Assembly (NCBI GenBank): GCA_047495785.1
Contig: JBLDXI010000038.1
Coordinates: 844,882 to 908,881, forward strand
Length of the DNA: 64,000 nucleotides
Direction of reading: 5' to 3'
From: Lepidodermella squamata
Lineage: Eukaryota > Animalia > Gastrotricha
Of this stretch, positions 56,101 to 63,999 are shown one piece after another (position 1 is the stretch's first letter; the number at the start of each line of letters is the position of its first letter). The translations under genes were made by a program, and so were the position numbers. The notes under the pieces were generated by a model. The model was given only the letters and a program-made list of their open reading frames with translations. It had not been told where the DNA came from and searched no databases.

Positions 56101-57044
56101 CTAAACTACAACAAACTCGCTCCAGCAAAACCAAGCTTGCTGCTTTTCACATAAATGATTGCCATTGCTAACACCCATTTTTATTTCGCCAAGACCGCGG
56201 CAGAAGCAGACATCTCGCTGTAATGATTGCAGCAAAGCGCGGTTTTTCCAGAGCACCTGATAATCAATACTCAATTGCATCGGGAGTGACTAGTCTTTTG
56301 CGATGAGACATTCAGCGGCGATGAGTAAGCCGTTAATACAAAAATAAACAACACGTCTGGCGAGAAAAACGCACGTGAAGCGTCACGTTCGCAAAACACA
56401 TTCACAATAAAAATATTTCATCTGCAAAAAATAACCAAGTTATGACCGAAAAATAAACGTACGTAGATCAAATCTGAGAAATAGCGATCCTTGATGTTGT
56501 GCAAGACGGATGCGTCATTGAGGCAGGTCAAGTCAGCCATGTCCTCAACTTTCGTAAATTTGGGTGGGTTCATTTTTTGCACCTCTGATTTCGCAACACG
56601 GTAGGATTTGCCAGTCTCGACGGATTCCACGACATATTCTTCGCCAACTAGATGAAAAATCAAGCTCCATTGTGAACCACAAGAAATAAACTTCTGAAAT
56701 GTATTACCATCTTCGCGAATACTCGCTGCGACGAATCCTTGTGAGTCATGAGGGACCCACACCAACTTTTTCGCGGTCCATGCAGCCTGAGCTGCCGGGT
56801 CATTTACCAAGCTGGTATGATTGTCGGCGCGCAGGCATCGCATGGAAGCAGCCAGATCATCATCGGCGGTATTAGCACTCGCGCTCACAGGCGTTTGTGG
56901 TGGAGGTGCTGCCACCGCTGTTGGCACCGGTGCTTTGGAAATAGCAGCATTCGGAGTTCCTCCAATGGGCTTGTTCAATGTTGAACTTGGGGGTTTCGGC
57001 ACGGCAGCCCCATTTTGTGTTTTGTTCACCAAGGATGGCCTCAT
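47106..57044 (-). CDS. MYH10: Non-muscle myosin II heavy chain (zipper/MYH9-10 class)
   Basis: LVWVP SH3-like region; [13 protein letters not shown]; [17 protein letters not shown]; [11 protein letters not shown]; DIAGFEIF; [22 protein letters not shown]; [12 protein letters not shown]; long heptad rod; Ser-rich tailpiece exon ending 47106. Confidence 0.97.
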
Positions 57045-60000: not shown

Positions 60001-61951
60001 AAGTTATACCAGTGAGTCAAAGCCAACACTCATTTAGCAAACGAGCAACTTGAGAGCATAGAGAACAAAACTTATGTCTCTCTGTGCTTTTTATGGTGCC
60101 TTTCTGTGGTTGAGCTCAAATGCTCAGGTAAGGATCTTTCAACGCGGATAATGATGAATGATAAGCATCTACACTTCTGGGCTTATTGACGATTCTGAAC
60201 TCCGAATTTCTCTCGGTTCTATCACTCTTCTAACGAAAAATATGCAAACTCAAAATCCAAATTGGAAGCACAATTGCGCTCGATATATTAATCTCCAAGG
60301 AATTCAGCCGGTAAATTTCTGAGAAGATCTAGAAGTTCAAGATTATTCATGTGGAATAAAATTAACACAAACTAATTGGATTGTGGCTGATGGCTGATGT
60401 CAATATTATTCCATTTGCGAAGACCTCTCAGGGTAGCTTCATCTCTCAGCATTATGCTTCTGATCTCTCTAGATGCGTAAAGGTTAGATCTCGGAACGCG
60501 TACCCTTAGAGGAATTAGGTTTCTCATACAAAAGCGTTCTTCTGATAATAGTTTTTCGAATACAAAACTAAACTATTACTGATGATAAGGTATTGAATAG
60601 AGGTTAGCTATGTCGTAGAGAAGCTTTCTTCCGATATTACTTGCTCTTTATTAGATACGAAACTCACATGTCATTGATCACTGATCACTGATCAGTTATT
60701 AATTTTAACTCAAAGATAACACAGCGTGATTATCATTGAGAAAAGAGTAGGTACATAATTCTGTAAATAAGTCTAGAATGACTCCGGAGATTCCTCAAGG
60801 AGCAGCAATCTTTAGCTATCTATAAATCAGATGATTTGAAACCTATAATTCATGTGTTCGGAGTTCGGATGTTGAACAAAAATAAACAATGTAACCAATG
60901 TTGAACATTGTTCTCAACAACGGCAACCGTGCTTTTGACCTAGAAAAAATGTGGATGTTGAGAGTGTGTCATCTGCGAATCATACGCACAAGAGAAGCGG
61001 GAATTGTAGTCTGCAATCACATTTCAATGGCATTGCAGGCGTCGTGTGACAGCAGTATATTTACTCTCAGTTGACCGAATGAAACGATGATCAGTGAAAA
61101 TCAGAAGTCTTCGACACAGGACAATTGATCGACTACTATCGAACGGTGTGAATAAGTGTTACAGTGATAAAACACACATCAGTGACGCGGCGTTCTGCTC
61201 TGATCATCGTATGCTGGTGCCTACTAATGTTGAATTGAAGGCGAGTGGGGCATTGGAAAAGTATCGTATGTGAATCAGAAGCGCAATCAGAGTCAATTTA
61301 GCTATATGCAATCTCATTTGTTAACTGCAATGACGCAGGCTTCAGTGATTTTCAGTGAAATACTCAGCTGACTAAATCATTGAAAGACATCCCACAATGT
61401 CGCGGCTTCGTTCGTCTAGCTCATTTTGAAACGGAAATTGTCTCAATCGTTCTTTGCATATCAGTTGTCAGTGTGATTATGCACCGCTCACTGATACCGA
61501 TGGAGTGATGTTATGAGCCTACCGTCTCGCCAGTGGCGCAGTTAATACTCCGCTGCTTCTCTTCTCACATTGTAACTGCGAGACGGAGCGAGCAGGGCGA
61601 GCGGAGTGGGGTAGATCTCACGCGGCTTTGTTGTTCTACCTCCTTTTGAAACAGAACCCTCCCTCAATAAGTTATTCTCGTGTGGCGCAGTTAATACTCC
61701 ACTCCGCAAGGCTTCCTTAGTTTTCAAACAGGACTGCGCGACAACCGTGTAACAATATGCTGCTCTCGTCGAAGTTTTCGCCTCTCACTCTACACAAAAT
61801 CTGTCGATGAGGGTAAACCCAGCACGAGCAATAAGACGTCTGTCCTCTAAATTAGGCGAGACCTAATTTGCATAAATTTGAATATTCATAGAAATAAAAT
61901 TGATTAGAATAAGTATTCAAAAAAGTTAAAAAGATTTGCAAGAGATTAACA

Positions 61952-62057
61952 AGGGTTAGGGTTAGGGTTAGGGTTAGGGTTAGGGTTGGGGTTAGGGTTA
62001 GGGTTGGGTTAGGGTTAGGGTTAGGGTTAGGGTTAGGGTTAGGGTTGGGTTAGGTTA
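61952..62057 (+). repeat. (TTAGGG)n tract 1 with TTGGG/TTGGGG variants
   Basis: Direct inspection. Confidence 0.97.
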
Positions 62058-62115
62058 ATTACCAGACGGGAAGCCTAAGCAACCCCGGCATAGAAGCTCT
62101 AGCAATCCCTTTCAC

Positions 62116-62173
62116 GGGGTTAGGGTTAGGGTTAGGGTTAGGGTTAGGGTTAGGGTTAGGGTTTAGGGTTAGT
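62116..62173 (+). repeat. (TTAGGG)n tract 2
   Basis: Direct inspection. Confidence 0.97.
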
Positions 62174-62315
62174 TTCTAGTTGAGTACCAGACGGGTCAAT
62201 TTTGAAATGCCCCGGCAAAATTGGCCCTGGCCTCAAGAAATGAACTTCGCGGGTTCAAAACCTCTAAGGTTGGTTTGATCAGTAACACTGAACAAATTTC
62301 AAACCCATATTTGAT

Positions 62316-62491
62316 AATTACCCATAGCCAATAGACTTGTTCACCGAGCGAGCTCAGTTACCCACTGTCATTGGAGATGTTCATTATCAGGTGAAGAAAT
62401 TCCTCCACCAAATAGGGACAATTACCCACTATCCTTGACTTGTTCACTACCCGGAGGCAGTTACCCACTGTCTTGGATGTGTTCATTGTAC
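62316..62491. repeat. Imperfect 104-bp-period duplication with TTACCCA subrepeats
   Basis: AATTACCCA..GACTTGTTCAC..CAGTTACCCACTGTC..TGTTCATT starting at 62316 and 62420. Confidence 0.75.
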
Positions 62492-62785
62492 TTGGGATCA
62501 ATGCCCATTGTTGAAAAATATATAATTCTAAGTAAAGTGCTATAGAGGTTCGCCAATAATCAGACCGGTTTCGCTATTTGGCTAAGATAGCTCATCAGTG
62601 ATTTTTGAGCCTCTGTAGAAGAATGATTTTATTCTGCTAAATGGACCGTTTATATAGGCCGCTGGCCACGTTTTTCATCATGGCCGCGCTGCGCCGCATG
62701 GTTGATTCACGTGAATGTACGTCCACGTGAACGCATGATTGCGTGATGATTTGCGTGAAAAAAGTATTCAGCGGAAAAAATAAGA

Positions 62786-62870
62786 AAAATTCTTGCACGG
62801 TGGCTGGAGTTGAACCAGCGATCTTCCCAGAAGCGGGCCTGATCATCACCACTACGCTGTGGTGCCGTGC
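62786..62870 (-). ncRNA. tRNA-derived Pol III-type unit, copy 1
   Basis: Box A-like CAGCGTAGTGG, box B GGTTCAACTCC within a perfect T-arm, T5 run just downstream. Confidence 0.65.
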
Positions 62871-62926
62871 TTACAAACTCATACCCATAAAGCGACAAAA
62901 AATGATTTTGCGTATTTTTCTCTCCG

Positions 62927-63013
62927 AAAAAATCTTTGCACGGTGGCTGGAGTTGAACCAGCGATCTTCCCGGAAGCGGGCTTGATCATCACCACTACGC
63001 TGTGGTGCCGTGC
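62927..63013 (-). ncRNA. tRNA-derived Pol III-type unit, copy 2
   Basis: Same boxes, T6 run; 143-bp period. Confidence 0.65.
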
Positions 63014-63069
63014 TTACAAACTCATACCCATAAAGCGACAAAAAATGATTTTGCGTATTTTTCTCTCCG

Positions 63070-63145
63070 AAAAAATCTTTGCACGGTGGCTGGAGTTGAA
63101 CCAGCGATCTTCCCGGAAGCGGGCTTGATCATCACCACTACGCTG
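63070..63145 (-). ncRNA. tRNA-derived unit, copy 3, 5'-truncated by telomeric repeats
   Basis: Matches copy 2 up to 63145, then joins GGGGTTAGGG directly. Confidence 0.6.
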
Positions 63146-63206
63146 GGGGTTAGGGTTAGGGTTAGGGTTAGGGTTAGGGTTAGGGTTATTAGGGTTAGGT
63201 AAGGGT
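63146..63206 (+). repeat. (TTAGGG)n tract 3
   Basis: Direct inspection. Confidence 0.97.
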
Positions 63207-63285: not shown

Positions 63286-63999
63286 TCAGGACAATGCTAC
63301 ACTCCTCGCTTGCTCCAGAATCTCCTCGATCTTGGTTTCAAGTTCCTGCGCTGTAACCTGCTCATCTCCCCATTTCCAGCCCGTTTTATCGATCGCTGTT
63401 CTCAGGTTGTTGTTTTCTGCTCTCGCTTTTTTTATCTCTGCCTTCTCACACTTTTCTGTTTGTTCCTTCGATAGTTCGCCTCGAATATCACTCAGATCCC
63501 CCAAAATTCTGGTGATTTTTTTGGCTGAAATTTTTCGATTTGTTTTTCGGGTTTCCTTGATGATTTTGTCGCTGTGTTCATCTACCACCCTCTTCATGCT
63601 CTGATCGCTGAATTTTGTTACACCGAAAATCTTTTCGAAGTTGTTCGCAATGTTCTGTTCTGTTGCTGTTCTCTTGTTGTTTTTCTCCGCCGCTGCTACT
63701 CTCGCGCTGGATTTGACTGTGGCTATAAACTCGCCAAACTTTTCGGCATAGACTTTTTCCCGAACGCTACCTCTGGCCTCGCTGTTCTCTCCATGCCTTA
63801 CCCCTTCTGCACTGCTGCTCGCACTGTTCGCTTCTCTGCACTGACCGGGTTGTGCCGGATGTTTCGGCCACATTTTTGGCCTGATTGCGTTAGGTGCGCT
63901 GCTATAACGGGCCTCGCTTTCAAGGTTGAAGTATCTACGCTCAGGCTCTGTCTCAAAACGGTTTGCTACCTTTTGGTGGTAATTTTGATGGAAAATTTG
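63286..63999 (-). CDS. Intronless K/E-rich, probably coiled-coil ORF, open to the window edge; possibly mobile-element encoded
   Basis: Frame stays open from 63999 to the stop at 63286 (at least 237 codons); no recognised domain. Confidence 0.5.
   Translation of the reverse strand, partial: QIFHQNYHQKVANRFETEPERRYFNLESEARYSSAPNAIRPKMWPKHPAQPGQCREANSASSSAEGVRHGENSEARGSVREKVYAEKFGEFIATVKSSARVAAAEKNNKRTATEQNIANNFEKIFGVTKFSDQSMKRVVDEHSDKIIKETRKTNRKISAKKITRILGDLSDIRGELSKEQTEKCEKAEIKKARAENNNLRTAIDKTGWKWGDEQVTAQELETKIEEILEQARSVALS

Follow-up and report, generated by a model that had tools for sequence, protein, structure and literature searches.

What does a short array of tRNA-like units do beside telomeric repeats, and to which genetic element does it belong? 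The question is raised by a 64,000-nt stretch of DNA from the gastrotrich Lepidodermella squamata (contig JBLDXI010000038.1, positions 844,882 to 908,881; in the following, the window), which carries on its minus strand a 143-bp unit repeated 2.5 times in tandem (62784..63145). An earlier note on this DNA, made from the letters alone, had read the array as a tRNA-like RNA refolding into a cloverleaf without an anticodon loop, and had taken it for either a non-decoding RNA made by RNA polymerase III (Pol III) or a TFIIIC-binding barrier. We find that the array makes up the 5' repeats of a non-coding module that carries a hammerhead, is present in multiple copies, and is here cut within a unit and capped by telomeric repeats. 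The explanation to which we give slightly better than even chances is that the 143-bp units constitute a tRNA-derived, non-decoding Pol III cassette that serves as the tandem 5' repeats of a telomere-attaching, Athena/Terminon-like, non-autonomous hammerhead element. The ground under it is established and consists of the anatomy of the array, its fold, its Pol III signals, its linkage to an element body, the multi-copy depth, and the occurrence of the array in a second organism.

Tandem Repeats Finder (TRF) reports a period of 143 with 2.5 copies, 98% matches and no indels at 62784-63145, and an independent repeat search recovers the same three copies, as does direct comparison of the copies with each other. 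The tandem array of 143 bp described earlier is thus confirmed. Read on the minus strand, each unit consists of a 77-nt tRNA-like part and a 66-nt T-rich spacer. Copy 2 (62937..63013, minus strand) is the reference copy, for which fold, pair probabilities and tRNA model score were obtained. Copy 3 (63080..63145, minus strand) is truncated on its 5' side at unit position 12 and matches copy 2 from there on; the nucleotides shared by copies 2 and 3 are all identical (132/132). Copy 1 (62794..62870, minus strand), characterized by its fold and by copy comparison, is the final unit ahead of the element body. Its tRNA-like part differs from that of copy 2 only by A32G, which lies in an internal loop, and by C42U, which turns the pair G37-C42 into G-U. 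These are the same two differences that had been noticed before; both are transitions, and C42U lies within a CpG. Past unit position ~79, copy 1 no longer follows the spacer, and the array ends there. At the other end, copy 3, in which A box, B box and terminator are preserved, passes straight into a (CCCTAA)~9 tract, located by TRF at 63147..63199 on the minus strand, that caps the truncated array.

The unit lacks the parts required for decoding. Across the 64 kb of the window, ARAGORN predicts no tRNA gene and none of the Rfam families attains its gathering score; the tRNA model RF00005 gives no match even at E<=10 in a 2.5-kb search. Applied to a 91-nt stretch, RF00005 scores 16.7 bits against a threshold of 29, so that the claim of no canonical tRNA held up once a tRNA finder was run. 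In the RF00005 alignment, the acceptor, D and anticodon stems all carry pairs flagged as non-standard. Neither a 7-bp acceptor stem nor a D stem nor a 5-bp anticodon stem with a 7-nt loop (U33, R37) is found; no 7-nt loop with U33 and R37 can be drawn, and the arm closes in a CUUC loop instead. ARAGORN, the Rfam alignment and stem checks by hand also rule out a selenocysteine tRNA (tRNA-Sec) and an intron-containing tRNA. What tRNA resemblance is left, in the T arm and the 3' acceptor strand, is aligned with high confidence only there. AGTGGTGA, CTTCC and the 3' end of the unit resemble tRNA-Gly, which may point to the ancestor.

So restricted a resemblance favours a plainer explanation, in which the units are a decaying tRNA pseudogene or a captured head of a short interspersed element (SINE), functionless and recently duplicated 2.5-fold in place, with a fold that is a by-product of a GC-rich, palindrome-rich remnant. 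The 100% identity of copies 2 and 3 would agree with this, as it implies a very recent duplication. We consider the explanation rather unlikely. Random decay does not readily explain why the two promoter boxes, the distance between them and the terminator persist when the decoding parts have gone.

These preserved signals are best described for copy 2. The A-box-like sequence CAGCGTAGTGG (unit positions 12-22; 62992..63002, minus strand) agrees with TRGCNNAGTGG at 10 of 11 positions, and the B box GGTTCAACTCC in the T arm (unit positions 55-65; 62949..62959, minus strand) is a perfect pattern match. The gap between both boxes is 32 nt, the canonical spacing of tRNA genes, in line with the standard spacing asserted before. 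The B-box pattern is found three times in 64 kb, each time within the array, against an expectation of 0.17. A T6 run that resembles a Pol III terminator (unit positions 82-87; 62927..62932, minus strand) is seen in the sequence after copy 2. It begins 5 nt past the closing stem, and a second T6 follows 24 nt further, in the spacer; copy 1 is trailed by runs of T5, T6 and T6. A box, B box, a spacing within 30-60 nt and oligo-T, the components of a type-2 Pol III unit, are therefore all present at the sequence level, and they support a description of the unit as tRNA-derived and non-decoding, with type-2 Pol III signals that look intact.

A tRNA-derived SINE would be built of head, body and 3' tail and be dispersed in high copy. 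The units are different because T5-T6 runs close every one of them within 5 nt, and because depth suggests a low copy number and linkage to one element body. The oligo-T that follows immediately, with no SINE body behind it, had been pointed out in the earlier note and is found as described. In the window, a search for a complement to the 3' end of the unit, resembling a primer-binding site, gave an exact match only in the array itself. Two further candidates were rejected. As a variant hammerhead or another Rfam ribozyme, the unit offers a core-like GUGAUGA (positions 22-28), but no GAA after the arm and no Rfam match. As a box C/D RNA, it offers the same GUGAUGA as a C-box-like sequence but no D box, and the alignments to sR18 and sR32 are weak.

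The minimum free energy (MFE) fold of the 77-nt part contains a 6-bp closing stem, a 6-bp hairpin, a bulged arm of 4+4 bp with the CUUC loop, and a 5-bp T arm with a 7-nt loop. For copy 2 it is predicted at -36.3 kcal/mol and makes up 84% of the ensemble; its z-score is -4.58, and 0 of 200 shuffled sequences fold as well. All 25 pairs are of Watson-Crick type (25/25), each with a probability >0.9. The computed fold equals the four-way structure without anticodon loop that had been drawn by eye, and it is retained within the full 143-nt unit. Copy 1 adopts the same fold at -34.9 kcal/mol (z -3.25), so its two differences do leave the structure intact, as had been stated. A set of 25 pairs without a mismatch and a z-score of -4.6 would be unusual for the random decay of a pseudogene.

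The implication that the differences in copy 1 are evidence for the fold does not survive, given that two random transitions would both suit the fold with a chance of 0.46 and that C42U sits at a CpG. Just two transitions, one of them at a CpG and together fitting by chance in 46% of cases, are equally what decay of a pseudogene would leave. The same explanation gains from the plus strand, which folds nearly as well (-36.2 kcal/mol, z -3.67). What decides the choice of strand is thus a combination of Pol III boxes, T runs, neighbouring features and a single G-U pair, as C42U gives G-U on the minus strand and an A-C mismatch on the plus strand. As to compensatory or consistent changes, the 2.5 copies offer the two transitions only, and no new stem change is among the visible differences in a second sequencing run, described below. 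By these calculations the fold is real in thermodynamic terms, but 2.5 near-identical copies and two transitions do not establish that it is under selection. A tRNA-like L-shape is doubtful, because the GG of the A box, which builds the elbow in tRNA, is predicted to be buried in the 6-bp hairpin and because a 2-nt bulge (CA) parts the 6-bp closing stem from the T stem.

A fold so well defined, with 84% of the ensemble and a z-score of -4.58, raises the possibility that the RNA itself is the functional product: a non-decoding Pol III RNA of ~80-85 nt, ending in oligo-U, whose four-way structure would act in trans in the life cycle of the element or in host regulation. Start and stop signals for Pol III match the ends of such an RNA, and the single stem change, tolerated as G-U on the minus strand, would be a mismatch on the plus strand. 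We nevertheless judge a trans-acting RNA quite unlikely. There is no significant covariation, with two transitions to draw on, and no match to an Rfam family; with the D-loop GG buried in a stem, tRNA-binding factors may fail to recognize the RNA.

The surroundings of the array change the picture. It is part of module B (62173..63145, minus strand), a non-coding unit of ~970 bp that we delimit from sequence and contig and that consists of the array, a promoter-like region, a hammerhead, a body and a 3' hairpin motif. Of the earlier claim that the array lies beside telomeric repeats, the adjacency stands, since it abuts the tract at 63147-63199; the array is not free-standing, being the 5' repeat region of module B.

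Two sequencing runs inform on linkage and copy number: X1, which is possibly the source sample, and X2, which is labelled as a different organism (organism B). A 677-nt contig in X1 spans 62177-62822 with a single difference; it begins at the telomeric tract, crosses the body and reaches into the first tRNA-like unit. It has a depth of 77, compared with 6.6 for the neighbouring unique contig (63200-64000, containing an open reading frame (ORF)); bins of the array have depths of 68-154. This suggests roughly 12 near-identical bodies, all joined to a tRNA-like unit, where contig depth is not a true copy number. Linkage of array and body in apparently ~12 copies speaks against a locally duplicated pseudogene, and for a trans-acting Pol III RNA family the copy number is low.

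In X2, contigs of 159-173 nt carry the array. Its best contig differs visibly at three positions in the spacer and has the two copy-1 variants in the tRNA-like part. That the array is kept in a second organism, with visible new differences in the spacer, again argues against a functionless remnant, and the seemingly better conservation of the tRNA-like part compared to the spacer in organism B would suit an RNA that acts in trans. Another X2 contig departs from the array 3 nt upstream of the first base of a unit and enters unrelated, non-telomeric sequence, which sets an upstream boundary to the array there. Of two metagenome scans, one returned 0 matches and the other 11 chance matches of 18-mers. 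Scans of prokaryotic genome and viral collections found no further array copies. Four ORFs in and around the array were looked up by exact match without result, and a protein word search with a spurious 89-aa ORF across the array returned nothing either.

Downstream of the array on the minus strand follows the promoter-like region (62649..62729), recognized in the sequence by two CACGTG E-boxes (62724-62729 and 62708-62713) and the TATA-like TATATAAA (62649-62656); a promoter function is presumed from these motifs. Just upstream of the TATA box, at 62660-62690 on the minus strand, we also note a hairpin GGCCAUGAUGAAAAACGUGGCC with a C-box-like UGAUGA, for which the alignment to snoR113 is weak (15.7 bits).

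The sequence between the promoter-like region and the body contains a candidate hammerhead ribozyme of the metazoan type I (62558..62625, minus strand), the core of which is aligned by Rfam models below their thresholds. Its elements appear in the order helix I, CUGAUGA, helix II (GCUAU/AUAGC), GAAA, a palindromic ACCGGU helix III (C-CG-G, U), and C at the predicted cleavage site. Helix II is 5 bp long and includes G10.1-C11.1; helix I can pair 5+4 bp between the flanking strands. The Rfam models HH9 and RAGATH-1 align all core nucleotides and score 12-16 bits against thresholds of 52-56; the near absence of helix III accounts for the shortfall. In metazoan type-I hammerheads, which work as dimers, helix III has 1-2 bp and a small palindromic loop (PMC4209133). 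The layout of the candidate agrees with this type. For the monomer, the predicted MFE structure differs from the hammerhead fold, as would be expected for a dimer-dependent ribozyme. It is the sole hammerhead core of its kind in the window, and it lies ~170 nt downstream of the array and ~385 nt upstream of the telomeric tract that starts at 62172. The segment 62543-62605 is common to other contigs of both organisms, with differing flanks and higher depth, and the ribozyme module is therefore common to several element families.

The non-coding body of ~300 nt (about 62557..62250, minus strand) was delimited in the sequence. Within it, a 36-nt motif (GACAGTGGGTAACTG...GTGAACAAGTC, minus strand) occurs three times at 62334-62472 with 61-78% identity.

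At its 3' end, module B has the motif TGCCGGGG-N-CCCGTCTGGTA (about 62185..62215, minus strand), found in the sequence, followed by a (CCCTAA)~9 tract at 62117..62172 (TRF). Behind this tract lies module C (62055..62116, minus strand), which has 62 nt and shares the 3' motif with module B, and then the innermost telomeric tract, (CCCTAA)~17 at 61952..62054 (TRF). In the form TGCCGGGG-N(14-16)-CCCGTCTGGTA, the motif is present at 62185-62215 and at 62060-62090, with conserved stem, differing loop, and (CCCTAA)n directly after it in each case. It is likely the 3' recognition hairpin of the telomere-attaching elements. Module C has the look of a relative of module B that underwent extreme 5' truncation, of the kind that aborted reverse transcription should leave. 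On the plus strand, a G run precedes TTAGGG in register at 3/3 junctions (AAGGG, CACGGGG and GCTGG, with GG, GGGG and GGG, respectively), as expected from extension by telomerase at microhomology. The complete minus-strand order, which supports the proposed element, is (CCCTAA)n, truncated array, E-box/TATA, hammerhead, 3' hairpin, (CCCTAA)n, the 62-nt relative, (CCCTAA)n.

How could such an arrangement have come about? We propose that a non-autonomous element with a hammerhead and the ability to attach to telomeres took up a copy of a tRNA gene. The recruited copy would have lost its decoding arms, kept the Pol III/TFIIIC boxes and the terminators, and then been amplified in tandem at the 5' side of the element. 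The sense (minus) strand ends in the conserved hairpin and (CCCTAA)n, which would fit a cDNA primed on the telomeric G-overhang. The present copy may have been added at a chromosome end, cut inside the third unit and re-capped by telomerase with TTAGGG. During this event the template appears to have run through 2.5 units despite five T runs, which makes a Pol III transcript an improbable template. It would be chiefly as DNA that the units act, namely as TFIIIC/Pol III sites that open or insulate the telomere-facing 5' side, while emitting non-decoding by-product transcripts of ~85 nt predicted to adopt the four-way fold. Tandem repetition could let this function outlast frequent 5' truncation.

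The passage of the template through the T runs, favouring a transcript not made by Pol III, also suits another proposal, namely that the units are RNA-processing signals in a long Pol II transcript, whose folds are cut by RNase P and/or RNase Z. Such cuts would trim telomere-side read-through and define the ends of the element RNA, and the tandem copies would give redundancy after 5' truncation. The model is mascRNA of MALAT1, which is cut from a Pol II transcript and keeps a regular acceptor/T minihelix. Like mascRNA, the unit is a tRNA-like cloverleaf without decoding anticodon loop; unlike mascRNA, it possesses Pol III signals of its own, and its junction is bulged. Closing stem and intact T arm are the minimal features that RNase P and RNase Z use, and on the sense strand the array lies directly downstream of (CCCTAA)n. 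We hold both the processing signal and the trimming role attached to it to be very improbable. With a 6-bp closing stem and the 2-nt CA bulge, the 12-bp acceptor/T minihelix is not formed; the telomere-adjacent unit has no 5' strand; and cleavage would destroy a template that was evidently copied across 2.5 units. A version in which the array is the 3' processing tail of upstream sequence, with RNase P exposing CCCUAA, was rejected as the main explanation because the copy at the junction lacks the 5' strand and because sequence 3' of the priming site would be left uncopied.

For the recruited Pol III cassette, the DNA-level function is inferred by analogy. Genes for tRNA (tDNA) and TFIIIC sites act as chromatin barriers, and 5' monomer arrays of mouse L1 are Pol II promoters. 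The likeness to both is an analogy only: a B-box array would be placed between repressive repeats and a promoter, and tandem 5' units would survive truncation. Taken further, the array might be a portable TFIIIC/Pol III barrier that shields the element promoter from telomerase-added repeats, with the tandem form selected under 5' truncation and the refolded RNA as a by-product. In this specific form we rate the proposal as unlikely, and a barrier role for TFIIIC as such as possible. The barrier idea, one of the two offered in the earlier note, suits the geometry better than was known then, because the array sits between a telomere tract and a promoter-like region.

The closest known systems are the Athena and Terminon elements, which have hammerheads and reverse-complement telomeric repeats and are 5'-truncated by telomeric repeats (PMC6431247, PMC8557442). 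[quoted passage not shown] It differs in the repeats, which are ACACCC or TCACCC in Athena/Terminon and CCCTAA here, and in being non-coding. Two of the three Athena-type layout features tested are present here, the 3' telomeric junction and the 5' truncation with cap; the third, adjacency of the hammerhead, is not.

This last difference is among the points that weigh against the element proposed here. The Athena hammerhead comes directly before the telomeric stretch, at a place from which the candidate is displaced ~385 nt upstream, and the candidate stays below every Rfam threshold. Within the readable part of the window there is no reverse transcriptase. The telomere-side sequence with its 195-aa ORF is single-copy and without relatives, so that this flank is not evidently retroelement. 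Breakage within the array and subsequent telomere healing could yield the same junction as truncated reverse transcription. Finally, only 2.5 near-identical copies are readable, which bears on the full-length element as well as on selection for the fold, and contig depth provides no true copy number.

Telomere-attached Penelope-like elements are the closest retroelement relatives of telomerase. To our knowledge, their expression at chromosome ends and the build of their non-coding passengers are poorly known. In the literature covered, to which the primary Terminon paper does not belong, no tRNA-like Pol III array is described in telomere-attached Penelope-like elements. Pol III modules in non-autonomous elements of other kinds are on record. 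Sm-alpha and Sj-alpha of Schistosoma are SINE-like elements derived from tRNA-Gln with a hammerhead (PMC2770079). They have in common with module B that a tRNA-derived Pol III module and a type-I hammerhead are found in one non-autonomous, tandem-prone retroelement. In Sm-alpha, the tRNA-Gln head and the hammerhead body form one SINE-like element that is dispersed, whereas here the units are closed by T5-T6, the hammerhead follows ~170 nt further on behind TATA and E-boxes, and the whole is seated on telomeric tracts. TRIMp3 elements (Helenus, Cassandra, Ajax) carry a Pol III promoter of small-RNA gene origin in the terminal repeats of a non-autonomous retroelement (PMC10886601). There, too, the embedded promoter sequence is unlikely to encode a functional tRNA. 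In contrast to module B, TRIMp3 elements possess long terminal repeats (LTRs), a primer-binding site, a polypurine tract and target-site duplications; module B has no LTRs, attaches to telomeric repeats and carries its units in tandem. With canonical tRNA genes and SINE heads, the unit shares A box, B box, 32-nt spacing, T arm, a length of 76-77 nt and oligo-T, but its acceptor, D and anticodon stems are unpaired, and anticodon loop, SINE body and tail are missing.

The comparison suggests that what is new here is a tRNA-like Pol III array within a telomere-attached, hammerhead-bearing element, while the kinds of components are already known. If the recruited cassette is real, it would stand beside SINEs and TRIMp3 as a third example of small-RNA gene promoters taken up by retroelements, and it would offer a directly testable mobile tDNA barrier at telomeres. 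If the units are merely a decayed tRNA copy, they would be an ordinary by-product of a genome rich in tRNA arrays.

Several neighbouring features complete the description of the window. The 195-aa ORF (63286..63873, minus strand, from the ORF list) encodes a lysine/glutamate-rich product and is single-copy by contig depth; its 3' side directly abuts the telomeric tract. It has no Pfam family and no relatives in a word-based search; telomeric insertions may thus have enclosed an orphan gene or a captured one. Further inward than the innermost telomeric tract, 60001-61900 is a high-copy repeat with many variant contigs, the summed contig depth of which reaches ~1500 where unique sequence has 6.6. 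A degenerate CCCTAA-like tract (1732-1800) lies within 1640-1860 on the plus strand and is flanked by the inverted repeat GGTAGAAGTGCGCTCTCAGAGGG ... CCCTCTGAGAGCGCACTTCTACC; this is an element of a different, telomere-mimicking type. An N-terminal exon of an animal-type myosin II is found at 56418-57044.

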